Assembly: GCA_048013815.1 (NCBI GenBank)
Contig: CM106585.1
Coordinates: 17,732,001 to 17,796,000, forward strand
Reading direction: 5' to 3'
Source of the DNA: Setoptus koraiensis
Lineage: Eukaryota; Animalia; Arthropoda
DNA length: 64,000 nt
Below the pieces are notes generated by a model that saw only the letters and a program-made list of their open reading frames with translations, did no database searches and was not told where the DNA came from. Each line of letters opens with the position of its first letter. Position 1 is the stretch's first letter. Below are positions 7,357-47,807 of the stretch, piece by piece. Made by a program: the position numbers and the translations under genes.

Positions 7357-7659
7357 TTATCGGCTTCTAACAGATTTCGGGGCGACGATGCTCTTGACAG
7401 ATTTCGGGTCGATGATGCTATTAACAGATATCGCGCCGACGATGCTATTAACAGATTTCGGGGCGACGATACTCTTGACAGACTTCTTGCCGGCAAGGCT
7501 TTTAAAAGATTTTGGGCCCAATCCTTTCGTTTCCTGCGTAGATTTTACACCGAGTGATGATGAAGTTTTCCTTGGACCAAGTCCAGTTTTAACAGCTTTT
7601 GTTTTTAGTGACTTTCGTGCACTCTTGGTCGTGTTACCTTGAAAGTCTTCTCCGTTCAT
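7357..7659 (-). CDS. 100-aa Lys/Ser-rich basic protein with 9-aa repeats (KSIVAPKSV); possible sperm nuclear basic protein
   Basis: ATG at 7659 (the track's start at 7665 is TTG). A 27-bp DNA repeat runs ~7371-7485. Strongly basic and low-complexity. Function is inferred from composition only. Confidence 0.6.
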   Translation of the reverse strand: MNGEDFQGNTTKSARKSLKTKAVKTGLGPRKTSSSLGVKSTQETKGLGPKSFKSLAGKKSVKSIVAPKSVNSIVGAISVNSIIDPKSVKSIVAPKSVRSR

Positions 7660-7825
7660 GCTCAAATAGTAAACTGTCCTATAGCATACTGCAGGGTGGG
7701 TGGAGCGTCTGGTCGCAACATCTTCGCAAACGTTGCTGCCTGAATAATTAAATCAATTATTTATTGTCGAATTGTATCAGTTGCCATGGCTGAAGCTGAT
7801 TATTCACTTATCTTTTGAGTTGGCG

Positions 7826-8670
7826 TCAAAGTCTGGCCTCACCGAAGGCGCTCGCCACCAACAAACAAAGACCTGTCAAGCTTAGAATAGTGACGATTAA
7901 AAATTGCACATGTTCCGCCGCAGCCGAATAATTATATTTGCAGCCCCTCTTGATCAAATCAATCAAGCATTTGAATAGATTCGAAGAATAGACAATGTAT
8001 TACTAAATGCTTCACTGGCGATACTACCAATCGAATGTCTCCATTCGAACTTACGGTTTGTCTATCTCAGTGAACTTACCACTTCCAATCTGTCGCAATA
8101 GTCGAATGGATCGGCTAGATGTGATAAATTCAATTTGATAATGTCAGATTTGAATGTTTGCGGTGATTCAAAGCCACAGCACTGATACCTCGTGTTCAGT
8201 TTATGCAATTGATCGGCATTCGTTTCGTCGAGGTGCTCATAATGATTTTTTAATTTATTCTCCACTGATTGAAAGCACAAAATAAACATTGAATAGAGGA
8301 GGCCTGAATAAGCGGCCGATATCATGATCAAATGAGTATGAGACTTTGCACAATTTGTCCATTCATGCACTATCTTGGAGCTTGTCTCTCCTTCTTGTTG
8401 GCTTTCAAGATACTCTGTTACCATTGTCGCAACGATGCTAACCAGAACAATTGTGCCAACAGTAAAAATTATGACACCTGAGGACCTAAAAACAGATACT
8501 ATGTTTGCCAATATAAATTTTTCCTCTGCTTCTATCAGGATCGTTGAACCAGTTATCAGTTCGAGTACGCACATAACTGTTATTGTCACCATAAATAAAA
8601 AGCCAACACTATCTGCGGCTGATTTTTTGTTGTACCTTGCAGCCGTTTTCTTTCTTTCCACAGGGGGCAT
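7826..8670 (-). CDS. Tetraspanin-like protein, 2 exons: join(8670..8080, 7948..7826), ~237 aa
   Basis: Three hydrophobic helices, then QCCGFESP. Donor GAAGTG|GTAAGT at 8079 and acceptor CAAG| at 7949 (131-nt phase-0 intron). Exon 2 reads RGCKYNY...FLIVTILSLTGLCLLVASAF, supplying the last loop Cys and TM4. Confidence 0.8.
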
Positions 8671-9177
8671 ATCACTTAAATTTGGTTGAAAATTTAGCAC
8701 TAATTCTGGCTGGATAAATTATCTGAACGAAATTCTGTTTCTTTCTATCGAGTTTTGCATTGATGTGCCGTTGTCGATATATTTGCCCTGGCTGGCTCGT
8801 GCTTCAATGTCGAACAGATCAACTTGCCAGCCCAACAGATTAACAATTAATGATTTACAGAGGGTCTGTAAGTGGACCCTCATTCTAGAAGAGAATTGAA
8901 AGTCTCCTGGAGAGTTCCGTATCTTTTTGATAATCCATCTCGAACAACAAAGAATAGAGGCGGACGTGACCAACCGATGGTTTCAGTGGGCCGAACATGT
9001 TTGCCGACCATTTCGGTGGCTGTGCTGGCTAAAAAGGTTAGTTACAGAGGAGCCGAAAAATTTTCAATTGATAAATTTATTGGCTAAATTTGAATAAAAG
9101 ACTAAGGAAGGTTGGTTTCACATGATTTCGGGATGGTTTCGCATGGCACAAGCATTTGGAATTGCACACTGCACATT

Positions 9178-10308
9178 CTAGGTTTTTTTTTTCTTGATCG
9201 ACTGCGACGATCTTCGGCCCAGCGAGCTCTTCGGAGTGGCGGAAGTACCTGAGCTGGCTGGGCCACCGATGGGGTGGCGCTTAAGATAATCTTCGCCTTT
9301 TGCTATGCTCACTTTCAATTCTTCCACTGCTTTCGGCAGCATTTGTTGTTCGTATTCGCTGAGCTTGCCCAATCCCAAATTCTTTGACACACCGTTTGGA
9401 CCCAGTTGCAGCGGCGTTGAAAAATAACTAACGCCCGGCACTACGTCTGATCTAACGTAAGCACACTCGACGATGTTGCTTTCGTTTCTCAATCCTTTCA
9501 ATAATGACACAACAAATCTGGCGCCCGCATACGCCATAGCCAGTGTTGCTGTACCAGTGCCGGCTTTGGCCTCCAGAACATGGATGCCAGCCTCTTGGAT
9601 GTTCTTGGTTGTTTTTTCCACGAGTGCCTGATCGCCTAATGCTGCCTGAGGTATTGCAGGCGTCGCTTGAGACAGCAACGGCATAATGGTGATTCCAGCA
9701 TGACCGCCAACTACGGGTAAATTCACTGTTTGCGGGTCTATCGGTGGCTTGAACATGTCTCGAGCCACAAATGTGCTGGCTCTAACTACGTCTAACGTGC
9801 AAACACCAAATATCCGATTTGGGTCATAGCAGTTCATTTTTTTGTAAACCTCGCTCACCAGAGGCACCAATGAGTTGACAGGATTTGAAATGATGGCCAT
9901 GAGGGATTTTGGTGCGTGTTCCGCGCAAACTTTTGCAATATCCACAATTATCTTTGCGTTCATGTCAAACAAATCGTCTCGTGTTTGGCCAGGTTTCTGG
10001 GGTCGACCGGCCGGTATAATAATAATGTGGGAATCTTTGACACAATCGGCCAATTCTTGTCCCTGGTGAGCGGTCACTTTGCAAAATTGATTGACATGAC
10101 TTAGGTCGGCAACAACGCCAGGACAATTGACCACGTCATACATTGCCAAATGCGAAATGTATACGGATTGACATTTTAGCAGCAACGACAATGGCTGACC
10201 AATACCTCCGGCCGCTCCAATCACGGCCACTTTGGCTCCATATTTATTTATGTCTGGCGGATTGGCCCAGTCGTTGCCGGTGCCAATCTGACTAGATGCC
10301 TTGGGCAT
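9178..10308 (-). CDS. Mdh2: Mitochondrial-type malate dehydrogenase paralog with an altered substrate loop
   Basis: KVAVIGAAGGIGQPLSLLLK, ISNPVN, TLDVVRA, VVGGHAG and ATLAMAYAGARF are MDH2 family motifs. Likely ATG at 10308. The loop reads PAGRPQKPGQTRDDLF against canonical PAGVPRKPGMTRDDLF. Confidence 0.95.
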   Translation of the reverse strand: MPKASSQIGTGNDWANPPDINKYGAKVAVIGAAGGIGQPLSLLLKCQSVYISHLAMYDVVNCPGVVADLSHVNQFCKVTAHQGQELADCVKDSHIIIIPAGRPQKPGQTRDDLFDMNAKIIVDIAKVCAEHAPKSLMAIISNPVNSLVPLVSEVYKKMNCYDPNRIFGVCTLDVVRASTFVARDMFKPPIDPQTVNLPVVGGHAGITIMPLLSQATPAIPQAALGDQALVEKTTKNIQEAGIHVLEAKAGTGTATLAMAYAGARFVVSLLKGLRNESNIVECAYVRSDVVPGVSYFSTPLQLGPNGVSKNLGLGKLSEYEQQMLPKAVEELKVSIAKGEDYLKRHPIGGPASSGTSATPKSSLGRRSSQSIKKKKT

Positions 10309-11027
10309 TTCGGTGGTGGAATCGTCGACCTGAATGTTGCGAACTTTCGTTTGACAACAATAGTAAAAGGATATCTCTGTAGCAAAGAGATACAATTGGA
10401 ATATAATTTTCAGTTGTATTCAGTTTTGATCGCAACTCGAAAAGATTGCAGTTGCTAGTCAATTGTGTGAGAGCACATCGCATTTCATCAGCAATGATTA
10501 TCTCGCGCAAGCAGTAGGCGACGTCAGGTGAATTGAGCATCTTATATGATAGATAGGCATTATAACAGCATTGTATAGAGCATCAGCAAAAGATTGCCGA
10601 AATCAAAAATCACGCGCCTGTTCATCAAATGGGCGCTTTATGTCCATTTGTTATCATAATGGTTTTTCCGAAAAAATCCAACTAACCACATTCAATTAGA
10701 AATTGTGCACGGCGACCTCTTTAAATATATCCATTGGAGCTTAAAAAAATAAATAATCCTGGCAATTTATTTCGAAGCCTCTCTACTCAGTGTTAGTGGA
10801 GTCCAGTACTGTAGCTTCGACTGTTGTTCCCATCATCTTCGATCGTTTGTCAATCGATAAATTTTTTCATGTAACTGCCAAACAGTTTTTCGGGACCAGC
10901 TCAACCTCAAGTACAGTATTATCCGATGATAGAATAAGGCAATTTGCAGTTGTAGAAGCAGATACCCCATAGAGGAGCTTTCAAGATTGCTCAAAATACA
11001 ACAGTTATTAGTAGGTCCCTTTGGATA

Positions 11028-12617
11028 GTGCCAACGTTTGTTGCCACATCCTGGATCCTAGTAGTCGGGTGTTTCTTTTTTAAATTTTATCGCAAACCGA
11101 AACAAGCGGATTTAGTAATACCACGTGTTTATGTTTTATGTGCACCAACAAATGTTCAGCGCACCTATGAAATGATACTTAGAGTTGGCATGCCGTCAAA
11201 AGATTATGAGGTTGGCAAAAATGAGCTAGACGTTTCTCTATTAGGTGGACCAAACAAAGAGTTGTTGCCGGTAACAAGAGTTGGCCCATTAGATTTGCCC
11301 GGTAACTTATTAGTGTCCCCTTGCTATTTAATAATGCACAGATTGACGCCTTTACCAGAAGTGAAAACAATATTGATATCACATACGGGAATCTCAACCG
11401 CTTCCCTTTACTGTTATGATTTGGAAATTTTTGAGCCGGCCACTGGTGAGAGACACTTGTTTGCCATTAACACTTGTATATCGTGTGTAAGCACTGAACT
11501 GCCACTGAAAGAAATTACAGATAAAGGGAAAAATCCTCGCTATCCGATATCTGATGTACCTTATCCATCAATTGACACATATGAGTTTTTAGTGAGCTGG
11601 GTACTAAATATCTCTTGTATACACCTTTCGGTTGTTCTCGTACACGATATGGAGTCTCTCAAGCATATGACACTGACTCATCACATTATTGTAGCTTCTA
11701 TCGCTGCGTTTATATCAACTGTTGTATTGATGGTTTATTTAGTACTGTTGAGAACTTATGTAAAACGGAACGAACTACGAGACACGTATTATGAGGAAAT
11801 AGTTAATGGTAAATGGTACTACATAAGAATGTGTGTAAATATTACAGTTGGTTTTTTAGCAGCAATTTTAACTATACTTGGTATTAATTCTTATTTCAAT
11901 GGTGCATCGACTCACATGGATCAAATTGATGAAGGCGAATCTACGCATACACACGAACTTTATATTATTCTCACTGAGATGTTGGCTGCTGAGATAATTG
12001 CATTTGTTTGGTCAATCGTTTCACTGACTACTTGCTACTCGATGCAATTGCCCGATTTCGGTCAGTTAATTTCAGTGAAGAATATAGCGGCAGATAAAGC
12101 CGCAAATGCATTAGGTTCTAACATGGAAGGAACTTTGTCAAGTGGAGCAAGTGATCTGAAAGGAAAGAAATTGATCTCACCGATATCGAGCCTAACAACT
12201 TTCAAAACTCTATTTGAGGCACCCGCGCCTAAAAAAACCGTTGCGGCTACGCAAAGTAGGCCGGCTAATATGGTTGCGCAGCCACAAGTAAAAAACATAA
12301 TTGGCCCCCAAAATTCCCCAGAAACTCATCCAGATCAAACAACAACCAGCCCAGAGAAGGCCCATGATGGACCAACAACAGATGAACCACGTGTTGCTGC
12401 TGATACTCAGAGAAAAACTGTCATAATTCACGAAAGTCATGACAAAGGTGAGGCACACACTGCTAAATCGCCGTCCAAGTTGCCCATTATGAAAGTCGCA
12501 AAAGGCATCGCGCAAAGACAAAACTCAGTATCGAAATCTCGTGCAAGCACCAGGCTAAAAACCCCAAAAATGGCAAATATCCAAGTGAATGCTAAAATAC
12601 TTAGCAAGTCTCATTAA
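11028..12617 (+). CDS. Multi-pass membrane protein with TM - PLAT/LH2-like domain - several TMs (polycystin-1-like order); 5' end incomplete
   Basis: The frame is open from 10956 with no ATG before the first TM, so an upstream exon is likely. TM WIVPTFVATSWILVVGCFFF is followed by YEMILRVG...LDVSLLG...VKTILISHTG...LYCYDLEIFEPATGERHLF, which matches PLAT strand motifs. Then 3-4 hydrophobic helices and a basic disordered tail. Confidence 0.6.
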   Translation: MPTFVATSWILVVGCFFFKFYRKPKQADLVIPRVYVLCAPTNVQRTYEMILRVGMPSKDYEVGKNELDVSLLGGPNKELLPVTRVGPLDLPGNLLVSPCYLIMHRLTPLPEVKTILISHTGISTASLYCYDLEIFEPATGERHLFAINTCISCVSTELPLKEITDKGKNPRYPISDVPYPSIDTYEFLVSWVLNISCIHLSVVLVHDMESLKHMTLTHHIIVASIAAFISTVVLMVYLVLLRTYVKRNELRDTYYEEIVNGKWYYIRMCVNITVGFLAAILTILGINSYFNGASTHMDQIDEGESTHTHELYIILTEMLAAEIIAFVWSIVSLTTCYSMQLPDFGQLISVKNIAADKAANALGSNMEGTLSSGASDLKGKKLISPISSLTTFKTLFEAPAPKKTVAATQSRPANMVAQPQVKNIIGPQNSPETHPDQTTTSPEKAHDGPTTDEPRVAADTQRKTVIIHESHDKGEAHTAKSPSKLPIMKVAKGIAQRQNSVSKSRASTRLKTPKMANIQVNAKILSKSH

Positions 12618-14124: not shown

Positions 14125-14877
14125 TCAAACAATTTCATCGAATTTGATTTTACTAAATGTGGTAATAATGTCAAACTGTGCAACATCTGCTGGTAGATAG
14201 GTTTTCTTTTCTCGTCTAACCAGAATTACTTTGAAGCCAACGTTTTTTGCCGATCTCGCCTCTTTTGCGTCGTCAGTAAAAAACACAATATTAGCTGGTG
14301 CAACTGCGATCGATTGTGCAATACGATGATAGGTATCTGGTGTAGTTTTTGCCCCAATTTTACTGTCAAAATGTCCGTCGATTAGTTGTAATAGACTACC
14401 ATAGATTGTGCAGGAAAACATTAACATTTGCACATCGGCACGAGCCGAGGAATAGATATAAATGGAAATTCTATCTTCGATTCGCCAGCGATACATCATT
14501 TCGGCGACATCTTTGAAAACGTGTGTCTTTAGTACACCCCTTGCCTGGCCATCTATCCAAACGTACATTTGTAAATACAGCATCGCAATAGTTGTGATAT
14601 TGTTTCGCAATAGAAAATCTATATGAATCAAAACGGACCTTTGCACTTCTATTTGTGCACGATCGTCATCCAATATCTTCGGCACATCTTGATTAAAGGC
14701 CTGCTGTCGTAAATCCTTGACAATTGATTGTACATGCTCTTCACCCCAGTGAGCTTTTACATAAGACTCTAGATTATTTCTAATGTATGGTGAGACAGAT
14801 GATGGATAATAATCGACCGATGTGGTAGTGCCTTCAATGTCCAGCAAGATGGCCTTAGGTTTTTTCATTCTGATCAT
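14125..14877 (-). CDS. ENOPH1: Enolase-phosphatase E1 (HAD family, methionine salvage), catalytic motifs retained
   Basis: LLDIEGTTT (motif I), YIYSS (II), FDSKIGAK (III Lys), FFTDD (IV). Confidence 0.9.
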   Translation of the reverse strand: MIRMKKPKAILLDIEGTTTSVDYYPSSVSPYIRNNLESYVKAHWGEEHVQSIVKDLRQQAFNQDVPKILDDDRAQIEVQRSVLIHIDFLLRNNITTIAMLYLQMYVWIDGQARGVLKTHVFKDVAEMMYRWRIEDRISIYIYSSARADVQMLMFSCTIYGSLLQLIDGHFDSKIGAKTTPDTYHRIAQSIAVAPANIVFFTDDAKEARSAKNVGFKVILVRREKKTYLPADVAQFDIITTFSKIKFDEIV

Positions 14878-15840: not shown

Positions 15841-16785
15841 ATGAAAAATATGCATCCGAAACTGTTTGGTTCCATCTTTTTTATATGTTTTGTCGCAATC
15901 GATGTTGCTCTAGTGAAATCAACAGAAATAGATGAGCAGAGTACAAGATCTGTGAAAGAATTGATTCTACGTTATGATAAACCCGGAACATTCCGCAAAG
16001 ATGTCTCGACTAAGCTGAGAAGAGTTCAAACACCGGTCAAGTCGGTCGAAGACTCTGCACCAATATCGGTCGAAGACTCTGCACCAAAATCGGTCGAGGA
16101 CTCTGCACCGATATCGGTCGAAAACTCTGCACCAAAATCGGTAGAGGACTCTGCACCGATATCGATCGAAAACTCTGCACCGATATCGGTCGAAAACTCT
16201 GCCCCGATATCGCCCGAGTCCATAAGAGCTGAAGCATTCAAGTTGGTATCCGATTTAAATGATCTTACAGAACAAATAGAACAAAGCAAGGAATTAATGT
16301 CGAAAGAAGACATTCATTATGGTAGATATTTAGACTTGGTTGATCGATTGAGACAAAAGCTCGCCAATGCCCCAAAAGAACTTCCTGTGCATTACAAAAA
16401 ATTTTTGACTAAACAAATGAGAGACTCCGAGCAGATGAAAGAGTGTGGCCGACTAATGAAATCCGTTGTAGAACTAGAGAAATCAGGCATCAATAGTGAA
16501 TCGACAATTCTAGAATGGGACAAGATGATCATGAGAATATTAGAGCTGAGTCCACAAACAAACAGAATCTGCAAGTGTCCACCGAGTGTCAAACTGTTTT
16601 TAGAGGACAAGAACAGATGTGCAAAGAGCGACCTGAGAAAAAATTTCGTCAAACAAGCTCTCGAACTAGTGAGATCAAAGAACGGAGGAGAAATCGCCAA
16701 GGCAAAATCGACCATTTCCACTACAATCGGCAGATGTCGAAAAGCAAATGTCCCCGTGCCGGCATGGTTTACACGAATATACTGA
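15841..16785 (+). CDS. Secreted orphan protein, 314 aa, with 8-aa repeats
   Basis: N-terminal signal-like segment KLFGSIFFICFVAIDVALVKS, (K/I)SVE(D/N)SAP repeats and a helical, charged C-terminal half. Confidence 0.8.
   Translation: MKNMHPKLFGSIFFICFVAIDVALVKSTEIDEQSTRSVKELILRYDKPGTFRKDVSTKLRRVQTPVKSVEDSAPISVEDSAPKSVEDSAPISVENSAPKSVEDSAPISIENSAPISVENSAPISPESIRAEAFKLVSDLNDLTEQIEQSKELMSKEDIHYGRYLDLVDRLRQKLANAPKELPVHYKKFLTKQMRDSEQMKECGRLMKSVVELEKSGINSESTILEWDKMIMRILELSPQTNRICKCPPSVKLFLEDKNRCAKSDLRKNFVKQALELVRSKNGGEIAKAKSTISTTIGRCRKANVPVPAWFTRIY
16038..16213 (+). repeat. 24-bp coding tandem repeat, ~7 copies
   Basis: TCGGTCGAAGACTCTGCACC(A/G)A(T/A)A-type units encoding SVEDSAPI/K. Confidence 0.95.

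Positions 16786-35335: not shown

Positions 35336-35337
<2 letters not shown>

Positions 35338-35374
<37 letters not shown>
35338..35374. repeat. (CT)n microsatellite, ~18 units
   Basis: Uninterrupted TC dinucleotide run. Confidence 0.95.
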
Positions 35375-35377
<3 letters not shown>

Positions 35378-35972: not shown

Positions 35973-36407
35973 ATGCATATCTCCCACAAAATATCGATGA
36001 TTGGCGCCGTCTTGGCAGTAGCTTTCGTTTGTTTGGCTTCATGTAATGCCGAATTCGAAGAATGCCAAAAAGATCTAGCCCAACTCCAAGAATCGTTCGT
36101 ACAATTAGAGAAAGCAGTCGGAGGCAGACTAACTAGAGGTTCGTCGAAAAGAGACCATCAAAAACAGGAACAATTATTAGAATTGATCGCAGATTTAGAG
36201 GACAAGAAAGAAGAATGCAAGAAATTGGCTCGTTCCCATGGAGTTTCAGAAGTTGAGGCTGAATCACCACCTGCAGCGCCCGAGGATTTCTCTTGGCAAG
36301 AAGTTAGTGAGGTCCAGCAATCTCTGAAGTCCGAAACCGCTGATGATGCCGCCCCTGAGGCTGCTGGTGAGGCAGCACCTGAAGAAGCACCTGAAGCTGC
36401 TCAATAA
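35973..36407 (+). CDS. 144-aa secreted coiled-coil protein with an acidic Ala/Pro/Glu tail
   Basis: Signal peptide (MIGAVLAVAFVCLASCNA), heptad pattern flanked by two Cys, a KR site, and AATAAA overlapping the stop. Confidence 0.8.
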   Translation: MHISHKISMIGAVLAVAFVCLASCNAEFEECQKDLAQLQESFVQLEKAVGGRLTRGSSKRDHQKQEQLLELIADLEDKKEECKKLARSHGVSEVEAESPPAAPEDFSWQEVSEVQQSLKSETADDAAPEAAGEAAPEEAPEAAQ

Positions 36408-36820
36408 AAAGCTTATTCTTGAATATAAATTAAATGCATGAAATTTCCAATGATCTAATTCGCATTCTTCTTGCCCTATAGCTTATTTCGCTTGATGCGA
36501 GTCGAAACTGAGCTTTTGATCTTTTATTTTATCATCTTTTATAACTTCATGAACTGCAATTATTGCAACAAGCTTATAAACAGTCTCCTACAGATTGTCT
36601 CATTATGAAACTTTAGTTCAAATCTGGTTTGCAAATCTGGGCAAAGTGTGATGAAAACTATTTCTTTGATTGTTTAGTGCTGTTTGTCGCTGATTTGATT
36701 TGATCCCGCGTTTCTTTTCCATCGGTTATCACCTTCGTTGGATTTACAGCTGACATCTTTTTCTCTTCAACTTCCACTTGAATCATGCTCGCTTCATCTA
36801 AAACGAAGATATTTATGAGA

Positions 36821-37681
36821 TTATCCTTGTGCGGATTGTAAAGCAGTTTGCAACAGATTGGTTATGCCAGCCGATTGCTGTTGTGCGGGTGGAGGTTGTT
36901 GCGGCATCGCAAGCTTGGAAAGATTGTCGTACAACTCATTAGGAGTGTTGGCTGGCGCAACCTGGATTTGTTCGCTGGACTTTCCGCTCAATGGACTACC
37001 CGGTTGAGCGGGTGCTGAAGATCCGCCCAATTGAGAAGATACTCGCTGGTAGAGACCTTTGACCTGTTGGGTTGGTATCAAAATATATCAAGGTTGATTG
37101 CCCAATTTCAGATATGGTCGTATCAGCTAGTGATAACGATGAAATAACTATTAGTAATTTCTACTTACTTCGGGCAACAGATTTGGGTTATTCTGGGCAA
37201 TTCTTTGCAATCCCGATGTCAGTTCGGACAGTGCTGATCGCACTCCAGTCTGGGCAGTTTGGGCCGCTTGTGAGGCTCCACTAACTGCCGTTTGACTTGT
37301 TGTTTGCGCTGCATTTACAGCAGAATTCGCTACACTCTCGGCTGGTGATTGTGGAGCGAATGGATTGCTCTGTTTTGGCTGGAACAACGATTGCGCCTGT
37401 TGAAGTAATTGTTGGGCTTGCGTAACCGACTGGGCCTGTTGTGCCAAATTGTTCAAACTCGCTAAGAATCCGCTACCTGGATCGGTGGCCGGTTGTTGGC
37501 GGCGCTGTCTCAGTAGAAATTGCTGCGGTTGATTTTTCTGGAAATTTTCGAACTCGTCGAGGGTTTCAACGGGACTGACAAAGAATCGCTCTTGTTCGGG
37601 CTGATAACAATTGATACTTGATGTGGCGGCAACCATCATCACTACTAAGCCGACACTGGCCAGCACAAAGAAATTTGTCAT
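36821..37681 (-). CDS. Secreted Gln/Ala/Ser-rich protein: join(37681..37169, 37063..36821)
   Basis: Signal peptide MTNFFVLASVGLVVMMVAATSS and RQRR furin-type site. Donor CCCGAA|GTAAGT at 37168 and acceptor CCAACAG| at 37064 (105-nt phase-0 intron) join the two track ORFs in frame. Confidence 0.8.
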
Positions 37682-38811
37682 GTTTGGATTGTGATTTAGT
37701 GTGTTCTGTGTGGACTGTGAAATCAAACTGAGATAGTTAACTATTGGTCAGTTTATATTCTAGTTTATTGAACTTCTGTCGAAGCCAGTTTATAGCGAAT
37801 GGTATGTGTATAATGTGCACAATCTTTATATATGTATATGAAAAAGAGATGACGAGAACTTTCGAAAAGAGACTCGTCTAGAAGCAAGAGAGAGTATTCA
37901 TTGTCAGGTGTTCAGATTGTAGCAGCTTAAGCAATCGTTGTTGTACAACAACCTGTTGTTGTTGTTGATTAGCGGCAGAGATATTGCAACTTCTCTTTGT
38001 TGTTGTTGCGGTGCAAGTAATGTAAGATGGAGGAACATAGAAAGACCTGCGAGCTCGAGGAGACCTCGCAATGCTATTTCGATTTGTGAGAATTGTTCGT
38101 TATCGGCTCTAAGCCTAGTCTTAAAGCTTGTGGTGCAACTACGAACGCGTCCAATGCGCGACCAATATCAGCAAGTTGTTGTTGTTGTTGCCGTGATAAG
38201 CATCTTGTTTCCAAAAGAACGAATTGTTTCGACAAGAAGAAATTACACACAGAGGCAACGTGAAGGTCATATCTAACCTGTTATGTTGTTCGTTGATAAT
38301 ACTTACCTGTAACTTTCAAGGTGCATTAACAACATTAATTGAGCTGAGTCTTACATCAAAATTATGATATTATAATGCGATAGAGGCTTGAGTTAAACAC
38401 CGTGGCAACATATGTAAATCCAAGTGAACCATTATTGCATGTTGCAACATGTTTATTCATAACTCGTTATGTCTTGCCGACGTGGCGGAGCTTCCAGCAT
38501 CCAACTATCCCATTCACTTTCTACTTGTTATTGAGCTGGCACGCCATCAGCAAGGAATTTTTGCGATTGTGTGTGCCTTTCTTCAACTTTCTTTTTTCCT
38601 CTCTTCATCATACAAAAGTAGCAGTCAAAGTCGGTAAGACCATCGCACTATTTATCTATTCGAGTTTCAATCTGAGTGTCTGACACTCAGAGAACAGGTT
38701 TTGTATCTTGCTCAAAATCGAAGCGAGCCAGCAGGGGTTACGTGCAAGATGATCTGACTGTTCATCCAATCAATATGTACAATCAACACAAATTGACACT
38801 AGTGGGGAGGG

Positions 38812-40545
38812 CTAACGAAATGAACTGTGTAATGAGTCACTAGGCACGACCGAACTGGGTCGGTTCCCCAACGATTTACCTTTTTGCAACGATTTACCTT
38901 TTTCTACTGATTTGCCTTTTCCCAATGATTTCCCCGTTCCCAATGATTTTCCCTTTCCCAATGATTTTCCCTTTCCCAATGATTTGGACCCGATGGTTTT
39001 GCTAGTCCGAACTGGAAAAATCATACTCGCAGTGGACTGTTTGACAGTAGAACTGGTGCTGCCGACCGCCGATGGAACTCCTGAGTTAATTGTCATCTGT
39101 GATTTAGATTGACTCACAACAGTGCTTAATCTTGATTTCACTCCGTCCATCAATGGATAGTAATGTTTTATCGCTAACAGAACTGAAACAAATATTGCAA
39201 GAATTGTTGCCAAAATAATTATACTTATATAGAACCCGACGTTCTTTCTTGAGCTAGATCGACAATCACTCAAATTTCGAATTTCTGCTATATTCTTTCT
39301 TCTGCCATCGGCGAACAGACAATTCGCCCGAACCTGTTCACTTATCACATTGTTTGACGCTACTAGATTACAAACAATATCACTTGTGCAATTTAAATCG
39401 TCTTGTGCCCATCTTAGTTTGTCGGTATTAGGATACTTTCCCACCATCAGAGTCTGCTGAAATATATAGCCCCATTTGCACATGGTTATAATCTCATCCC
39501 CACGATTGGTTGTCTCGAAGAATTCATTTAAGTCGATATAGATGACTATTGGGCATCTCTTGACAACTTTTTCGCCATCTCTTATCATTCCCTGAGAGAA
39601 AAAGGTAGCAGGAATATCAGTGAATGACAGATGAGTTACGCCAACCTTTTCTGTGACATTTTCTTCCCTGCATATAGATTCGTTGAATTGTATAACATCG
39701 TTACTAAATTGTCCGTCTGTCATCATTGGTGGATCACCTTTGTTTTCCTCACGCCAGTATATGAAATTTATGTGCAAATTGTTTGTGGGTAGGTCAGGCG
39801 GTCTTATTCTGAATTTACCAAAAATTTTTATGCTCTTGCTCTTAAGGTCATAATAAGTGGAATCTGCCGGGTTCATTAGATCATGGGGAGCGAATAATAC
39901 ATCTCTGCGTTCATGAATATGGCTTGTGTAGGAATAGCGAAATTCTATTAATTTATTTTGCAGAATTTTGTTCAACCACATCCAGGTTGTATCAGTTACT
40001 TTGAAGTTGTCAATAAACAATACTGATGGTCTTTTTAACTCATCAGATAAAGTGAAACTTATTTCTTTAGCCTCTTCAATGGGTGCACTATTGTTCAAAA
40101 CAACCTGTTCTATGTTGGTAAAATCCATTCCAGATCTGATTTCGCGTTCGTTTATGAAATTTTCGTCTACATTTAAATCAAATGCTCGAATATCTGTGCG
40201 TTCAATTGCATTCTTTATAAGCATTTCCTCGCAAGTGGAAGTCGTAAAATCTCGTTGGAAGATACAAGACAAGGCATAGTATTTCAATTTTTGTCTTTCC
40301 GATTTATCTTTATCGAAGTGCAGATTGCAATGATACTCTGTCTCTGGAATTTTACAGTCCCCAATGATCACATCATGCTGATCCTCCATGTGCACATTGG
40401 GTACCAGTAATAATAGAATCATGATTGATCCTACAATGCTACTGGTGTAATATTTCAGCGTCACGTCCATCAACCTCAATGCCTGCCGAAAGAACGCACG
40501 GCTGATTGCTGGTTCTAGTTCAGAATTGCAACGTCTCCAATACAT
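38812..40545 (-). CDS. Type I membrane protein with a Cys-containing, possibly degenerate LRR-like ectodomain and a (KSLGKG)n tail
   Basis: Signal-like segment IVGSIMILLLLVP, TM VGFYISIIILATILAIFVSVLLAI, and an 18-bp repeat x~7 at ~38863-38990. Confidence 0.8.
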   Translation of the reverse strand: MYWRRCNSELEPAISRAFFRQALRLMDVTLKYYTSSIVGSIMILLLLVPNVHMEDQHDVIIGDCKIPETEYHCNLHFDKDKSERQKLKYYALSCIFQRDFTTSTCEEMLIKNAIERTDIRAFDLNVDENFINEREIRSGMDFTNIEQVVLNNSAPIEEAKEISFTLSDELKRPSVLFIDNFKVTDTTWMWLNKILQNKLIEFRYSYTSHIHERRDVLFAPHDLMNPADSTYYDLKSKSIKIFGKFRIRPPDLPTNNLHINFIYWREENKGDPPMMTDGQFSNDVIQFNESICREENVTEKVGVTHLSFTDIPATFFSQGMIRDGEKVVKRCPIVIYIDLNEFFETTNRGDEIITMCKWGYIFQQTLMVGKYPNTDKLRWAQDDLNCTSDIVCNLVASNNVISEQVRANCLFADGRRKNIAEIRNLSDCRSSSRKNVGFYISIIILATILAIFVSVLLAIKHYYPLMDGVKSRLSTVVSQSKSQMTINSGVPSAVGSTSSTVKQSTASMIFPVRTSKTIGSKSLGKGKSLGKGKSLGTGKSLGKGKSVEKGKSLQKGKSLGNRPSSVVPSDSLHSSFR

Positions 40546-40856
40546 CTGTGACTTGTAGAGGGGTTTCCACTCTCTTGATACATGATTCGATCAGTTAGCC
40601 GTTTGTTGCTCATTTGGTATCAGTATTGCAAGCTTGACTGGTTGATAAAAGAAAAAAGGGGGGACATTGAATGACAACAGTGAGCTAAAGCACATTCAAA
40701 GGAGGATAACGCGCGCAAGACGAAAAAAATTGAAAAATATTCATGTTTGCATCGAAACAGTCAGAAGATCTACATTACGTTATTTTACTTACATAACAAA
40801 AACACAGCACAGTTATCCAATAGCTGATACGTGATATACTTATATTTTGATAGATT

Positions 40857-41078
40857 ATGGATGAAAAATTGTTAGAAGCAGTGTATTTAAGTTTATTCGG
40901 GGGCGTATCAGCACTTTTCTTCATATTGGCGAGCCGTTTCGCTGCTAGATTCGGTAAGGATAAGATTTCCGAAGGTATATATAGAAAATATTCTGTTACG
41001 CCTCAAGAAGCCAATCTGATTCTAGATACGCCTGTAAAAGAGTCAGCCGTGACAAATGCTACCAAAACGAAAGACTAG
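40857..41078 (+). CDS. 73-aa small membrane protein
   Basis: ATG start, one hydrophobic helix (AVYLSLFGGVSALFFILA) and a charged tail. Fills a gap between genes. Confidence 0.55.
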   Translation: MDEKLLEAVYLSLFGGVSALFFILASRFAARFGKDKISEGIYRKYSVTPQEANLILDTPVKESAVTNATKTKD

Positions 41079-41371
41079 TTAAAGAGTTGGACGTTTGAAA
41101 AAAAAAAGGTTCTCTCCTGCAAATGATGGAAAGAGGGATCAAGACAATTATAGCAATGGTGCACAATAAAATTAGTTGACTGGAAAAATCGGACACAATA
41201 CTATTTGTGCAGTTAGTTTGCAATCGGTGTTTTTAATCCATACAACATATGTTCTGATGATCATTTGAATTATCCTTCGAATCTTTTAATTGTCATCTTT
41301 TCACTGTCGATAGACATTGGTCTCTGGTGCTGGTGATGGCCATTAGGCTAAATATATAATGGCCTAAAATT

Positions 41372-41620
41372 TTATATCTTAGGTTTTGAGTAAGCTCTAT
41401 AGATGATCATGGCCGTCATGACAGCGATTCCAACTGTTGCCATTGTTGTCAGAACTCCTTCCAATGTCACACCGTTGTTGTTATATCGTCTATTGTAGCG
41501 TCGACGTGCTCTAGGCTCGTCCATTTCGGCGCCCATCTGTTCCAACTCCTGCTCCAGTTCTCGATCGAAATCGTCGTCGCGTATCGCTCTACGGCCCCTA
41601 CTTTTCGACTTCTCTGCCAT
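41372..41620 (-). CDS. 82-aa tail-anchored membrane protein
   Basis: ATG at 41620, highly charged N-terminus, C-terminal TM VLTTMATVGIAVMTAMIIY and a short basic end RAYSKPKI. Confidence 0.65.
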   Translation of the reverse strand: MAEKSKSRGRRAIRDDDFDRELEQELEQMGAEMDEPRARRRYNRRYNNNGVTLEGVLTTMATVGIAVMTAMIIYRAYSKPKI

Positions 41621-42247: not shown

Positions 42248-44197
42248 ATGAGTGACACTCTGGACTCAAAATCTAGGGCATTGGTTAGGACGTATGATTT
42301 TGCAAAAGATGGTTATGAAGTGTTTGAGGAGATAAATAGTGGCTCTTTTGCTAGAGTTTATCGTGGCTTACATAAGAAAAAAGAGCAAGTAGCTATAAAG
42401 ATAATGGATCTCACCAAAACAACTAAAAATTTTCGCACCAAGTTATTGCCGATGGAATTGATAGCATTGAGAACATTATCTCACCCTTATATTATAAAAC
42501 TTTTAGACATCTACTATCATAATTCAAAAATTTACATTTTTATGGAGCTGGCTGACAATGGCAATCTAATTGAGTATGTCCTGAAATATGGCGCTGTTGC
42601 TGAGACGAAGGCACGCCTTTGGTTTGCGCAAATATGTAGCGCTGTAATTTACATGCAAAATAGCTGCTTGTTGGCTCATAGGGATCTCAAATGCGACAAT
42701 GTTTTGTTGCATCAGGACTCGGCCAGACTAACTGATTTTAGTTTAGTTTGTCGAGTGCGTCACACAACGATTCAAGTCATGATGCCCGAAAATCCTCTAG
42801 TTATAAATCCGAATTCAAAATCAAATATAAGCACTCGTCAAGTGCAAAGATTGGCCACCACTTTTTGTGGTTCGCCGGCCTATGTCGCGCCAGAAATTCT
42901 ATTATCTAGACCCTATGATCCATTTATTGCTGATTGTTGGAGTTTGGGTATAATTTTGTATGTTATGTTAAATAATGCCCTGCCTTTCGATGATTCTGAC
43001 TTACCCGCCATGATTGCGAATCAATTGCGCAACAAGTGGTCATTCAATAATCGTGTACAGCCATATCCAAGTTCTAGCTCGCGTCAATTGATTAGGGCCA
43101 TGCTGCAACCGAAACCGTCGCAACGATACGGTATCGAGAAAATAATGAATCATCCGTGGCTAAGGGCGCAGATGCGAGAGGTACAAGCCTTTGTAGCGGC
43201 TCAAGAGCAAGAACAGCAACAACAAATAGAACAGCAACAGCAACAATTACAAGAGCAACAGCAGCAGCAACAACTATCAGAACAGCAGCAACAAGCTAAT
43301 GTTGCAGCAACAACAGCACCGGCGACAACAGCGCCGGCGACAACAGCGCCGGCGACAACAGCGCCGGCGACAACAGCGCCGGCGACAACAGCACCGGCGA
43401 CAACAGCACCGGCGACAACAGCGCCGGCGACAACAGCACCGGCCACAACAGCACCGGCCACAGCAGTACCGGCCACAGCAGTACCGGCCACAGCAGTACC
43501 GGAGGTAGCAGCACCGGAGGTAGCGGTACCGGTAACACCAGCAACTGCGGATATTTCACAACGATCGCCGGTTAGCCCGACATCTGCGAATAACATTCCA
43601 GTGGCTTCAGGTGCAACCCAGGGAAAGGCGCGAACAAGCCGGAAGTATGCGGCAGAAAAAACGCCAGATCGAGCTAGCGCATCACCGGCGGCTGCAGGGC
43701 CGAAAGGTTCTAGAGTCGTTGCAAAAACGCCGGATCGAGCTAGCGCTTCACCAACAGTTGGGGCGAAACATAAGGCGCGTTCGCAGAGATCCTCTGCAAA
43801 CTTGAAAAAAGTCAATCAACAACAGCCAATAAATAGTCCCGCTGGCGCTCCACCGGGTACGAGGGTGTCGAAGAGCCAACGGAAAAAGCAACAAGCTTCG
43901 GCAAACAAAGAAAAGCGAGAAAAAACACCCCAGAAAGACGGCAGGAGTATTAAGACTGCAGCAACAAGTCCAAAGCAGCATGGCGGTAGCGTCTCTCCGT
44001 CAGCAAATAGCAAAAAGCTAGAGCCAAAGAAAAGTGACTCGCCGCTACCCGTTGCTCCACAAGTATCCAAAGCAAGTGTTGATGTAGTAACTAGTTTGAA
44101 GTCTCGCAGCAGCTTCCAGTCACCCTCACCAGGTAGCGCAACATCACACGCATCGGATGATCCACTCAACTACACTAATCAGGACAAGAAACAATGA
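42248..44197 (+). CDS. TSSK: TSSK-like kinase with poly-Gln, (ATTAP)n and a basic C-terminal extension
   Basis: SGSFARVY, VAIKIM, HRDLKCDNVLL, TDFS, TFCGSPAYVAPEIL, PYDP..ADCWSLG. Confidence 0.9.
   Translation: MSDTLDSKSRALVRTYDFAKDGYEVFEEINSGSFARVYRGLHKKKEQVAIKIMDLTKTTKNFRTKLLPMELIALRTLSHPYIIKLLDIYYHNSKIYIFMELADNGNLIEYVLKYGAVAETKARLWFAQICSAVIYMQNSCLLAHRDLKCDNVLLHQDSARLTDFSLVCRVRHTTIQVMMPENPLVINPNSKSNISTRQVQRLATTFCGSPAYVAPEILLSRPYDPFIADCWSLGIILYVMLNNALPFDDSDLPAMIANQLRNKWSFNNRVQPYPSSSSRQLIRAMLQPKPSQRYGIEKIMNHPWLRAQMREVQAFVAAQEQEQQQQIEQQQQQLQEQQQQQQLSEQQQQANVAATTAPATTAPATTAPATTAPATTAPATTAPATTAPATTAPATTAPATTAPATAVPATAVPATAVPEVAAPEVAVPVTPATADISQRSPVSPTSANNIPVASGATQGKARTSRKYAAEKTPDRASASPAAAGPKGSRVVAKTPDRASASPTVGAKHKARSQRSSANLKKVNQQQPINSPAGAPPGTRVSKSQRKKQQASANKEKREKTPQKDGRSIKTAATSPKQHGGSVSPSANSKKLEPKKSDSPLPVAPQVSKASVDVVTSLKSRSSFQSPSPGSATSHASDDPLNYTNQDKKQ
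43216..43520 (+). repeat. CAG/CAA tract followed by a 15-bp coding tandem repeat (~12 copies plus degenerate units)
   Basis: GC(G/A)ACAACAGC(G/A)CCG units encoding ATTAP, grading into ATAVP and EVAAP. Confidence 0.95.
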
Positions 44198-44493
44198 TTA
44201 AGGAAATATCAAATAAACAGCACTTTTAAGTCGATTTTAGTTTTTTCCAGATATATGGGCTCTGACATTGACAAAAGAATATCTCCATCATACTGTTAGT
44301 GTTTTATCTGGTACCAAAAGAATTTTCATTCAAAACAGATTTCGTTGATTCCTAATCAAAACAATTGAGGTCGATCTGCAGTTCCCCCGATGAACATTTT
44401 CACTTGCTGCACCTACCTCAATCTCAGCATATCGGCAATAATACATATGTACAATCCATAATTAATGAGGTAACAATAATAATTGATTGTTTG

Positions 44494-45537
44494 TCAATCG
44501 TTTTCGGTGCCACCTTTATCCAATGCAGCGTTATTATTTATACTGTTTGCATCTATTGCGTCCTCATTCGCTCGATCCATTGACGTGGTTGGTGGTGACG
44601 GAATAGATGATGTTGGAATAGAAGAAGACGATGGTGTTTCTACTTGTGGTACATTGATCTCTTGACCTAAACACCAATTGTGTCGCATTACATCCTCCAT
44701 CGAGGGCCGTCTAGATTCATCTGGCTCAAACATTCTATGTATGAGATCTTTGGCGGATGTGCTAACTTCAAATTCTTTGTCCTCTCTATATTTGTAAATG
44801 CCCAGCAATTGTGTCTGGAGCATTCGTTTTATGTCTCTGAATTTGAATGGGAATTTATTGTTTAACATACCATACAAGACAACACCCATGGCCCAAACAT
44901 CTGATTTGAACGGATTGTAGGGCTTCTTTTCCAGTATTTGAGGCGAATAATAGGGCAACGTACCGCAGAATGTTTCGCTCAAATTGAGCCTGCCAGTTTC
45001 GGCGTCGTAAGCTATTCTAGCGAAGCCAAAATCGGTTAATTTGGCTTGGTTTTGAGTATCTAACAGTATATTGTCTACTTTAATATCCCTGTGGGCAATA
45101 CCGAATCTACTATGACAATAATCTAAGGCACTACCAACCTGACAAAACCAAATTCTAGCTTGTGACTCTTGGAGGGCGTCGTGCTTTTTTATATAATCTC
45201 CTATGGTGCCATTAGGTGCAAATTCCATAAATATAAATATCTTGCCGGCCATTCGAAATATATCAAAGATCCTAATAACATTCGGATGTCGAACTTGTAT
45301 GAGTACGCTGAGCTCACGAGGTAGAAATTTCTGCTTGAATTTCTCGCCACATTTTTCTAGATCCATCAATTTTACAGCAGCGGCCGATTCAACGCCTCCT
45401 CGCACTTTCGTGCATAGATTCACCGTGCCAAAGGCCCCAGAGGCAAGCCTTTTGTAGATTGTGTAACCTTTTTTCTTGAGTACAGCCAATGTTCTCGGGT
45501 CTAGTTGGTCACTTGGATCAAAGGTTGGTTTTCCCAT
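44494..45537 (-). CDS. TSSK: TSSK-like kinase (APE motif reads SPQ)
   Basis: ASGAFGTV, AAVKLM, FLPRELSVL..VRHPNV, HRDIKVDNILL, TDFGFA, TFCGTLPYYSPQ, PYNPFKSDVWAMG. Confidence 0.9.
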   Translation of the reverse strand: MGKPTFDPSDQLDPRTLAVLKKKGYTIYKRLASGAFGTVNLCTKVRGGVESAAAVKLMDLEKCGEKFKQKFLPRELSVLIQVRHPNVIRIFDIFRMAGKIFIFMEFAPNGTIGDYIKKHDALQESQARIWFCQVGSALDYCHSRFGIAHRDIKVDNILLDTQNQAKLTDFGFARIAYDAETGRLNLSETFCGTLPYYSPQILEKKPYNPFKSDVWAMGVVLYGMLNNKFPFKFRDIKRMLQTQLLGIYKYREDKEFEVSTSAKDLIHRMFEPDESRRPSMEDVMRHNWCLGQEINVPQVETPSSSSIPTSSIPSPPTTSMDRANEDAIDANSINNNAALDKGGTEND

Positions 45538-46222
45538 TTTATTCTAATGTCGCTACTAGTGCCCTCCACAAATAAGCCACCGTTAACCATACAAGCCATC
45601 TATTGATTCTAGCCAACAGTTTGGGGACATCAAGTAATGATGAATCACTAAGAATTTGGAGCAATAATTTTTACTTAGGAACAACAAAACTAGAGATCTT
45701 AATTTATGACCTGTCAGCGCGATAATAACAGAAATATTTCACGTGGCGATTCCGATCACAAACTGAAAATAATTTTTTCGGCCGCGTGAACTACAACTGA
45801 TCAATCACCTGCTAACGGATCAAAGATAGCTAGCGAAAATTTCAATAATAAGAGAACAAAGCCGATATAATCGACGACATGACCAGTCCCTGAAAAGATA
45901 ATTTGGATACCAAAATTGGTCAAATATCGGCGCAGTTCTCTATTGATCGAGACTAGATTGTAGAATTGAATTTCGTTGATCTATGTTCTCTCAAACAAAC
46001 TTTAATTTACACTCAAAGAGTATCAAGGTGAACGCTGAATTGGATCCTGACTATTCCATGGTTCTAACACCAGTGGTGTGATATATTTGTTTCAGCGAAT
46101 GAGAAAAATCATAAAGGAAGAATCAACAATTGTGAGAATCGGATGACTCAAGCAGCTGGCGCTAATTGCTTTTGTGACCCACCAAATCACCTAGTCAGCA
46201 ACCAACAAAAAACGACAAGTCT

Positions 46223-46537
46223 ATGAGTACCAAAGCAAATAGTTATAAATATCAAGCAACAAAGCAGCCCTTCTCCGCTAAAAGCATTATAAATAATACT
46301 TATGATCATGAACGGCACGATGAACCGACATACATTAGGTTATTTCCTAAATTCGTCGCCTCAGTTTATACAAAACAACCACAATATGTGCCAGAAAATT
46401 ACATCCCGACAGTTCAACAAACACAGCCGCAGGCATTCAGAACTGTGGTCGAGAAAGGTGCCCACGGTGAGATGGATAGAGTTTCGGCGATACCGTCAGA
46501 TTTTGAGCATATATTCCACTTTAGCGACGCAGAGTAA
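46223..46537 (+). CDS. Small orphan ORF (104 aa), possibly the first exon of a spliced gene
   Basis: ATG start. The end overlaps a donor-like GCAGA|GTAAGT, and a possible acceptor AAACAG| near 46649 would add GLHNVHPKK. No recognisable domain. Confidence 0.45.
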   Translation: MSTKANSYKYQATKQPFSAKSIINNTYDHERHDEPTYIRLFPKFVASVYTKQPQYVPENYIPTVQQTQPQAFRTVVEKGAHGEMDRVSAIPSDFEHIFHFSDAE

Positions 46538-46872
46538 GTTTTCCCTTCTTTTAATCTAATTTACATCTCGCTAACACTGACACACAATTAATCCTTCATG
46601 AAATTATGTTCAGTAGTTACTAATAATTGCAATATCTCTCAAAAAACAGGGGCCTTCACAACGTCCATCCCAAAAAGTAGTGGTAATGTTCTGTTGACAT
46701 GATTTCAATGCTTTCACAGTAAACAAATTGTACCTAGAAGAACAAATCGACAATTGCCACTCATAAATTTGAAGAGATCGGTCTGAAATTAGTCAAGCAA
46801 TTTCAGAGAAATTAGATTGATATTGGAATTAAAAAAATTGGTGCACTTTTTGAATGCATTGCTCTCTTTCTA

Positions 46873-47807
46873 TTATTGATTGCCTTCCGTCCGAGGCAAC
46901 TTTGGAGTGCCGGTAATATTATTTGTTTTTTTGTAACTTTTCGCCGAATCTTTTGTGTTTTTTGCTGCTTCGTGATTTTCTGAAAATTCATTGCTCGCAT
47001 CTTCCGCCGTTGATGATTGAGGCGATAAGCGACCCGTAACTATTGTCGCTGGCGTAACAAACTGCTTGAAGATTGCTCTAGGTCTCTTGACGATCCTTCG
47101 TATGATTGGCTTGTCTTCTGGAATCGTTTTCGCTATAACCTCGAAAAGGGCAGAATCTTTTATTGTTGCCGGTCTATTTCCGAAGCCCAGTGTAGCAGGT
47201 GATACAACGTCGCTAGATTTGAAAACTTGTCCAGCAATCTTGGGCGAATGACTTGATTTTCTATTAGATGATGATGATTTTGGTTTGATTACCACAGCCG
47301 GATCGGATTCAAGAATTATTGGTGTGTCAGGTAGGCGACTAGCTCTTCTCAGTTCATAGAATAAAAGGCCAGAGAAGCCAACCAGAGCTCCGGCCATTAG
47401 ATAACCACCTTGGTATGATCCAGTTACATCGTGTATCTTTCCGATAATAGGCATACCAAAGATTGTGCCCACACCAGTCAGACTCAGCATCATTCCATAA
47501 AGTCCAATTAATGAGTCGGGACTAAACAAGTCCTGCAATATGATTGGTTCTAAAATGGTGGTTGTTCCTGAGACAAAACCAAAGAGGAACATGTAAAGAG
47601 CCATGACTAGATAATCTGTGGAGAAAGCGGTACAAATTGTTAGTAATCCAGCTAGGACCGTTGTTGTAGCATAGACATGCGATCTGAAATTCTTTGCAAT
47701 ATAATTGGCCACAAATCCTGTAGCAAGTCGGCCCAAAAATTCAGCCAGGGCATTTATGGCGATCAACCATGAGGCGCCTTGGCCATCTGTAACTTTGTCG
47801 TACAAAC
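46873..47807 (-). CDS. MFS monocarboxylate-transporter (SLC16-like), C-terminal half only; 5' part lost at the junction with the A/T block
   Basis: LIAINALAEFLGRL, LFGFVSG...ILQDLFSPDSLIGLYG, FGMPIIGKIHDVTGSY..GYLMAG. There is no ATG, and the frame runs directly into low-complexity sequence. Confidence 0.88.

Follow-up and report, generated by a model that had tools for sequence, protein, structure and literature searches.

A candidate neighbourhood of male-reproductive genes in a 40-kb block of the eriophyoid mite Setoptus koraiensis

The 64,000-nucleotide stretch of Setoptus koraiensis DNA analysed here (assembly GCA_048013815.1, contig CM106585.1, positions 17,732,001 to 17,796,000 of the forward strand; hereafter the window) contains a compact gene block of some 40 kb which, with moderate confidence, is best read as a genuine neighbourhood of genes that mainly serve male reproduction in this eriophyoid mite, and above all its sperm. 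The core of the neighbourhood would be formed by two genes for DC-STAMP-domain fertilisation factors and three genes for kinases of the TSSK family, accompanied by what could be sperm-style machinery, namely a dehydrogenase very probably derived from MDH2 and bearing an altered loop, a probably non-catalytic ENOPH1-like protein, a diverged R-SNARE, a diverged tweety-family protein, tetraspanin-type proteins and an MCT-like transporter, while the fast-evolving, repeat-bearing orphans of the block may be sperm-surface or spermatophore proteins. The block holds about 25 genes at the level of open reading frames (ORFs), from at least ten families plus orphans, within 40 kb; an initial annotation, made from the letters alone, had counted ~27. 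Pfam recovers DC_STAMP twice, Pkinase three times, Ldh_1_N and Ldh_1_C, HAD twice, Synaptobrevin and Tweety where that annotation had placed such genes; in three cases the Pfam coordinates, 16926-19664 (DC_STAMP, minus strand), 9178-10395 (Ldh_1_N and Ldh_1_C, minus strand) and 25983-27500 (Pkinase, plus strand), are slightly wider than the gene limits of Table 1. Sperm-type families (DCST, TSSK) are enriched in the block, as are conserved families whose members here have diverged strongly.

The established roles of DCST1/2, Sneaky, SPE-42/49 and the TSSKs are what point to the male germline as the site of expression. In mouse, fish, fly and worm, fertilisation depends on DCST1/2, Sneaky and SPE-42/49, sperm factors that are expressed in the testis (PMC8055269, PMC8989947), and the DCST proteins carry a C-terminal non-canonical RING finger with six invariant cysteines (PMC8989947). 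Both DC-STAMP proteins of the block (Table 1) exceed the cut-off for DC_STAMP (PF07782) and have six hydrophobic segments each. The protein of 896 amino acids (aa), with an atlas score of 0.97 to DCST2 clusters, has a Cys-rich, RING-like C-terminus; in the 788-aa protein, DCSTb, the RING is reduced to CxxC, and DCSTb and its ortholog in L007 (one of three other eriophyoid Logan assemblies, with L011 and L017, whose contigs were compared) keep just two or three C-terminal cysteines. A downstream Cys-rich exon was sought for the DCSTb gene and none was found, and no Pfam match to RING_DCST1_C was reported for the DC-STAMP proteins of the block. The DC-STAMP genes evolve fast: the L007 ortholog of DCSTb is about 28-30% identical to it (E 5e-85), which is about 30% versus 71% for one of the kinases (kinase a, or TSSKa) across the same species pair. 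A word-indexed homolog search with DCSTb returned nothing, not even close kin, its list probably being swamped by low-complexity words. As in the vertebrate Dcst1-Dcst2 pair, two genes for DC-STAMP-domain sperm factors lie close together; however, in mouse and zebrafish the two are head-to-head neighbours with overlapping 5' regions (PMC8989947), whereas the mite genes share a strand and are separated by 3.5 kb that contain two other genes, and one copy has lost most of its C-terminal RING finger.

All three kinases have TSSK6 as their best match in the PDB, as the initial annotation's designation of them as TSSK-like would predict; on PDB matches and named relatives, their CAMK-group domains stand closer to TSSKs than to MARK, AMPK or SIK. 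The margin is clear only for kinase b (160 bits for TSSK6 vs 147 for the next match); for kinase c TSSK6 leads the list by a small margin, and for two of the three MARK and SIK follow closely behind. Kinase a has the motif KFLPRELS in common with TSSK6, and its named relatives are overwhelmingly TSSKs of acariform mites, plus fly CG14305. The three thus resemble the TSSK family (mammalian TSSK1-6, fly CG14305) in their best solved relative, in this motif and in their named relatives, and differ from it in that two of them bear long low-complexity arms. They are ~35% identical to each other; kinases b and a are adjacent, and the orthologs of kinase a in L007 and L011 are 71-75% identical to it. 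A metagenome scan with kinase a brought up just remote TSSK-like loci, which contain introns and are not accompanied by other genes of the block. Kinase b carries a 15-nucleotide (nt) coding repeat in 13.9 copies, and its tail at 43100-43540 (Q-rich CAA/CAG plus ATTAP repeats) draws thousands-fold read depth from unrelated contigs in all runs, so that depth is meaningless there.

The dehydrogenase is very probably a diverged duplicate of MDH2, as judged from alignment and phylogeny. Its PDB matches are human and pig MDH2 (E 1e-105), and in the tree it shares with its ortholog P0001, from another sample, a stem of 0.9 substitutions per site inside a well-supported eriophyoid MDH2 clade of 318-aa proteins, on which ordinary branches mostly measure about 0.05-0.2; the fast-diverged MDH2 paralog of the initial annotation is thus upheld. 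Its nearest named relatives come from Aceria tosichella and Fragariocoptes setiger. The arginine of the GVPRKPG loop of MDH2 selects oxaloacetate, and a glutamine at this specificity position is found in lactate dehydrogenases. The copy reads GRPQKPGQ, as does P0001, versus GVPRKPGM in all canonical copies, with a glutamine (window 9997-9999) replacing the selecting arginine and a new arginine two residues upstream. P0001 is 85% identical to the copy and retains its N-terminal extension and KKKK tail, and the ratio of nonsynonymous to synonymous substitution rates (dN/dS) between the two is 0.09; from such strong purifying selection it would follow that the burst of change came early and that the product is in use. 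The copy has a tetraspanin-type gene beside it in each of the two species where it occurs. None was found in the other eriophyoid samples of the protein collection, and the duplicate therefore looks lineage-restricted. The ordinary 318-aa MDH2 of another eriophyoid adjoins genes for Brix, a GT7 glycosyltransferase and a RabGAP; when a canonical MDH2 was sought in the sample of P0001, the one candidate checked came from other samples. The copy recalls the LDH-C-type germline enzyme paralogs of mammals, in that a dehydrogenase has been duplicated and altered, its neighbours are sperm-type genes and an MCT-like transporter is near; it differs from them in deriving from a mitochondrial-type MDH2 whose substrate arginine has become a glutamine. 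The called canonical eriophyoid MDH2 ORFs (L002:10001-10957; P0003-P0035) measure 317-321 aa and start about five residues before the NAD-binding glycine motif (MSLISKIAVLGASGG), with no mitochondrial presequence visible in them; either a 5' exon may have been missed or import may be different.

For both HAD proteins human ENOPH1 (E-1 enzyme) is the best PDB match, and the named relatives of these genes in other mites are enolase-phosphatase E1. The two are ~25% identical, and the view that both are fast-diverged paralogs fits only one of them. In copy B motif I reads DITGT and motif IV LTK, and the HAD catalytic residues are not found; it groups with P0252, P0278 and P0292 (support 99), and across this clade, to which L018 also contributes, the motif I glutamate is replaced by T, N, S or M and a lysine stands at the motif IV aspartate. 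This lineage is probably a non-catalytic pseudoenzyme, and an old family rather than a one-off decay. In the alignment copy A retains motif I (DIEGTTT) and motif IV (FTDD), its distance to tetranychoid ENOPH1 is about that of another mite's ENOPH1, and its ortholog P0241 (L017) is 72-73% identical.

The remaining assignable proteins are strongly diverged. The VAMP-like protein has no PDB match at E 0.01, and many VAMPs are present in the PDB; the tweety-like protein, whose gene has a 39-nt coding repeat, scores 30 bits against TTYH3 in the PDB, and both agree with their earlier description as fast-diverged. The CM1-like ORF ends 14 nt into the tweety-like ORF (20686-20699), on the same strand and in another frame, which may reflect either very tight packing or one transcript; the CM1-only protein proposed earlier is retained as a coiled-coil ORF with a Cnn_1N match, though one that stays below the Pfam cut-off (Table 1). 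Two tetraspanins had likewise been proposed, and both genes do show the Cys-Cys-Gly (CCG) motif and, after intron removal, a layout of 3+1 transmembrane (TM) segments, although gene 2 remains below the Pfam cut-off (Tetraspanin, PF00335, 18.6 vs 32.1 bits) and gene 1 has no Pfam match. A putative second exon of gene 1 encodes TM4, and in gene 2 a 168-nt GT..AG intron at 29173-29340 (CAG/GTGAGT...CAG) removes an in-frame stop. The tetraspanin-type genes also evolve fast, the ortholog of gene 1 in L001 being 56% identical with a dN/dS of 0.37.

Parts of the grouping recur in three other eriophyoid assemblies, in a differing order. In L007 some 3 kb separate the orthologs of TSSKa and DCSTb; a PPP-family phosphatase gene lies in this interval, and a 160-aa Arg/Ser-rich basic ORF (L007:308-787, minus strand) stands directly beside the kinase gene. 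In L011 the TSSKa ortholog has a further ENOPH1-like gene, the third and a very diverged one, ~1.3 kb away, and between the two is an Arg-rich ORF of 277 aa (L011:4119-4952, minus strand) that contains about ten repeats ending RRRRS-G-QHSGV. In L017 the ortholog of copy A abuts another TSSK-like kinase gene on one side and a WASH-7 gene on the other. The Arg-rich ORFs of L007 and L011 are candidate protamine-like sperm nuclear proteins, by composition; the window showed no Arg-rich counterpart, its basic proteins being K/S-rich. A reading of a 222-aa ORF of L011 as SNAP-25-like was dropped for want of Pfam support, and longer L007 and L011 contigs, sought through neighbouring proteins, were not found. 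Recurring membership with varying order fits a neighbourhood in which content outweighs order. By way of illustration and not as a test, for a set of about 10,000 genes (PMC7738191), the chance that one given single-copy gene falls at most three genes from another is about 6 in 10,000; since linkage is inherited, the cases are not independent.

The block is poorly represented in bulk RNA. X4 is the only RNA run of the same species, recognisable by a GT..AG joint without mismatches and by patchy coverage; X1, X2 and X3 are DNA runs, with flat depth and contigs that cross genes and spacers. Of the sampled words of 16.9-22.9 kb, where the DCST2-like, CM1-like and tweety-like genes lie, 24% occur in X4; for copy A the share is below 5%, and kinase a has no contig there. 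Over 41.9-47.9 kb the small spliced gene with a coding sequence (CDS) starting at 46223 is well covered, its contig skipping 116 nt with GT..AG ends and no mismatches, and there are otherwise scraps of the repeat tail of kinase b and a trace of the MCT-like gene. Such low representation fits what is expected of male- or testis-limited genes in bulk material from a female-biased population. A literature search found no study of sex-biased expression in eriophyoids, and expression data separated by sex or tissue were looked for and not found.

Table 1. Features of the window, with the evidence for each (positions are those of the window)
Feature	Position	Strand	Evidence
Small basic K/S-repeat protein, 100 aa, isoelectric point (pI) 11	7357-7659	-	ORF, composition; no Pfam match
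Tetraspanin-type gene 1, 202 aa	7831-8670	-	exon 1: three TM segments + CCG motif; GTAAGT donor at 8079
Very probable MDH2-derived gene, 376 aa	9178-10308	-	Pfam Ldh_1_N + Ldh_1_C; tree
Orphan multi-pass membrane protein, 481-529 aa, basic S/K tail	11028-12617	+	ORF, hydropathy; no Pfam match
VAMP-like, very diverged R-SNARE, 174 aa	13123-13647	+	Pfam Synaptobrevin E 5e-10, 39 bits vs cut-off 26
ENOPH1-like copy A, 250 aa, HAD motifs intact	14125-14877	-	PDB 1yns E 1e-37
Orphan secreted repeat protein, 314 aa, SVEDSAPI repeats	15841-16785	+	N-terminal hydrophobic segment; 24-nt repeat x7.1
DC-STAMP protein, DCST2-like, 896 aa	16926-19616	-	Pfam DC_STAMP E 3e-29
Coiled-coil protein, weak CM1 match	20028-20699	+	Cnn_1N 17.6 bits, below cut-off 28.5
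Tweety-family protein, very diverged, 746 aa, K/S-repeat tail	20686-22926	+	Pfam Tweety 57 bits vs cut-off 32
Second DC-STAMP protein, DCSTb, 788 aa	23197-25563	-	Pfam DC_STAMP E 2e-47
TSSK-like kinase c, 500 aa, long N-terminal low-complexity arm	25998-27500	+	Pfam Pkinase E 1e-58
Tetraspanin-type gene 2, 470 aa spliced	28130-29707	-	giant second extracellular (EC2) loop with CCG motif
Orphan S/T/G/K-rich membrane-anchored protein, 725 aa	30622-32799	+	composition, coding repeats; no Pfam match
ENOPH1-like copy B, 268 aa	33220-34026	-	PDB 1yns E 2e-28
Six orphan genes, both strands (next six rows)	34472-41620		ORFs, hydropathy; no Pfam matches
Orphan, single hydrophobic segment	34472-35020	+	hydropathy
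Orphan, sole N-terminal hydrophobic signal-like segment	35973-36407	+	hydropathy
Orphan, sole N-terminal hydrophobic signal-like segment	37151-37681	-	hydropathy
Type-I-like orphan, two hydrophobic segments, 577 aa	38812-40545	-	hydropathy
Orphan, single hydrophobic segment	40857-41078	+	hydropathy
Orphan, single hydrophobic segment	41372-41620	-	hydropathy
TSSK-like kinase b (TSSKb), 649 aa, Q-rich + ATTAP-repeat basic tail	42248-44197	+	Pfam Pkinase
TSSK-like kinase a (TSSKa), 347 aa	44494-45537	-	Pfam Pkinase
Small spliced gene, 113 aa, CDS start 46223, intron 46534-46649	46141-46760	+	X4 contig + spliced ORF
SLC16/MCT-like transporter, C-terminal half	46873-47805	-	Pfam MFS_1; aligns to MCT2/MCT1 residues 275-437
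A/T-only block	47808-64000		composition + contig comparison
K/S-repeat stretch, 100-aa protein	7368-7516
K/S-repeat stretch, MDH copy	9178-9260
K/S-repeat stretch, tweety-like protein	22779-22911
K/S-repeat stretches, 725-aa protein	31406-31464, 32422-32484
K/S-repeat stretch, 577-aa protein	38867-38985

About eleven of the block genes are orphans, most with at least one hydrophobic segment, signal-like or membrane-spanning, and several bearing repeats. The 577-aa orphan gave just a weak leucine-rich-repeat (LRR) lead in the atlas search (score 0.88), and a 73-aa orphan a weak match to a small membrane protein encoded close to the kinase a ortholog in L011. The basic repeat protein described earlier is present as the 100-aa ORF, with an in-frame 27-nt repeat in 4.4 copies; coding minisatellites occur in six block genes, and basic K-S-x repeat tails (KSAKSNKS, GKGKSL, KSVKSIV) in unrelated block proteins. 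Introns are present in three block genes, namely the 470-aa tetraspanin-type gene, the 202-aa one (donor seen, exon 2 putative) and the gene at 46223. The initial annotation had described the paralogs as mostly intronless; 83.7% of genes were intronless in the first sequenced eriophyoid (PMC7738191), and since eriophyoid genomes are mostly intronless, intronlessness here is no mark of retrocopies or testis paralogs. Scans with Rfam and for tRNA over 1-48000 returned no RNA genes.

Gene-dense DNA of ~40% G+C fills the window from 1 to 47.8 kb, and a 397-bp tandem repeat (2.9 copies, 97% identity) lies to the left of the block at 1165-2332. From 47808 to 64000 follow 16 kb of A/T-only, non-periodic sequence (0.8% G+C; plus-strand A+T composed of 72% T and 28% A), within which there is a 500-N gap at 55919-56418. 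A DNA contig of run X1 equals the window without a difference over 43,473-47,804 and then continues for 3.5 kb with sequence unlike the window, and a contig of run X2 likewise departs past 47,804; since these contigs of the same sample continue with other sequence, the A/T-only block is unsupported by reads, and it is probably an assembly artefact that lies outside the cluster. The right edge at 47,805 is an assembly junction and not a biological end, the last gene being cut there with its C-terminal half alone retained, so that the earlier end coordinate, 47807, has to be given up as a biological edge; the gene cluster may run past the usable part of the window.

Several points weigh against the reading as a male-reproductive neighbourhood. 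The male-germline claim relies on homology and context. The low share in X4 comes from one shallow bulk run with no baseline region and would fit any weakly expressed gene, and the plus-strand gene at 46223 is clearly expressed in bulk RNA. A shared, conserved promoter motif was sought and none was found; the word CAATAG/CTATTG, which 9 of 24 genes carry no more than 100 bp from the ATG, was rejected as not significant after correction for 230 words, and further ruled out by its occurrence in both orientations and its absence from orthologous promoters in L001, L007, L011 and L017, so that the search gave no positive sign of cis-regulation in common. The paralogy of the MDH copy is argued from the tree, the loop change and a different genomic context in another species and not from a canonical MDH2 in the same genome. 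Copy A, which keeps its motifs and shows ordinary divergence, may be the only active enolase-phosphatase and so a possible housekeeping enzyme, a role that its near absence from X4 counts against; the initial annotation's statement that the block has no clearly conventional housekeeping gene thus holds in that no such sequence was met, and is qualified by copy A, which need not be a diverged paralog. Acariform mites have an expanded TSSK family, which makes co-location likelier, and ordinary conserved microsynteny with local shuffling would also give recurrence in other species. Finally, given the head-to-head arrangement in mouse and zebrafish, the proximity of the DCST pair may be inherited from a bilaterian ancestor.

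The best-surviving alternative, which still appears unlikely, builds on these last points and traces the grouping to ancestral linkage and to local duplication, without any functional neighbourhood: the DCST genes would be an old tandem pair, the TSSKs, ENOPH1-like genes and tetraspanins would be old local duplicates, and bystanders would have been kept by microsynteny in a two-chromosome, gene-dense genome. The vertebrate Dcst1/Dcst2 pair (PMC8989947), the adjacency of TSSKb and TSSKa and the presence of family pairs within 25 kb all agree with it. The duplicates are, however, ancient (kinases ~35%, ENOPH1-like proteins ~25% identical), so that local duplication fails to explain why unrelated sperm-type families lie together. 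A linkage that persists while order differs among species is what neutral local inversions would produce, and the failure to find a common promoter motif points the same way; yet the neighbours of TSSK orthologs in the three assemblies are differing members of the set (DCST, PPP phosphatase, Arg-rich ORFs, ENOPH1-like), and the lineage-restricted MDH copy also landed in the block.

It is distinctly improbable that the block is a region without sex specificity, made up of weakly expressed, fast-evolving genes restricted to the lineage and adjoining DNA that is rich in repeats or hard to assemble, with DCST and TSSK there by chance. To our knowledge, DCST and TSSK proteins are sperm or testis factors wherever tested, and the same families co-occur in contigs of other species; the MDH copy, moreover, is strongly constrained (dN/dS as above). 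These observations stand against the features that such a region would explain, namely the share of orphans without a family among the ~25 genes, the frequency of coding minisatellites, a satellite to the left and an assembly break to the right of the block, and low RNA coverage overall. Very unlikely indeed is a partly germline variant in which the region is male-reproductive and the secreted low-complexity orphans are spermatophore or accessory-gland products rather than sperm proteins, since, although eriophyoid males deposit spermatophores (PMC7738191) and the orphans at 15841 (+), 35973 (+) and 37151 (-) combine a sole N-terminal signal-like segment with repeat, Q-rich or acidic composition, their signal peptides are judged from hydropathy alone.

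The preferred reading, a neighbourhood of male-reproductive genes, corresponds to a phenomenon already known in flies and mice, for which the mite block is a candidate. The testis neighbourhoods of Drosophila melanogaster (PMC2994658) and the testis-specific positional clusters of the mouse (PMC548148) are likewise runs of unrelated genes over tens of kb, with common testis expression, often with fast-evolving genes and duplicates of housekeeping genes, and with an order within the run that is not essential. By analogy with Drosophila (PMC2994658), linked genes in the mite would share a permissive chromatin or expression state in the testis, through which the neighbourhood would persist, and gene order itself would not be required. 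The mite differs from these systems in that expression is deduced rather than measured, in its ~45 Mb, nearly intron-free genome, in which the run is far denser (~25 genes in 40 kb), and in being haplodiploid with sperm transfer by spermatophore. A more far-reaching version, which has to be regarded as rather unlikely, would make the block part of an island of sperm genes that is conserved throughout Eriophyoidea, where kinases would co-evolve next to their substrates and housekeeping enzymes have been re-tooled for aflagellate mite sperm. The K/S-repeat tails of the tweety-like, 577-aa, 725-aa, 100-aa and MDH proteins could then be arrays of TSSK phosphorylation sites, and re-tooling might be seen in the Arg-to-Gln change of the MDH2 copy near an MCT-like transporter and in the one ENOPH1 lineage that is now a probable pseudoenzyme.

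If male-limited expression proves true, no testis-type gene neighbourhood would have been described in a mite before this one, and its host has a genome that is among the smallest and most intron-poor of animals, with minimal regulatory DNA and thus a setting in which the effects of a neighbourhood should be readily dissected. The MDH2 and ENOPH1 copies would offer clean cases of enzyme re-tooling, and the block as a whole supplies candidates for the sperm and spermatophore proteins of a group of crop pests in which molecular work on reproduction has hardly begun.

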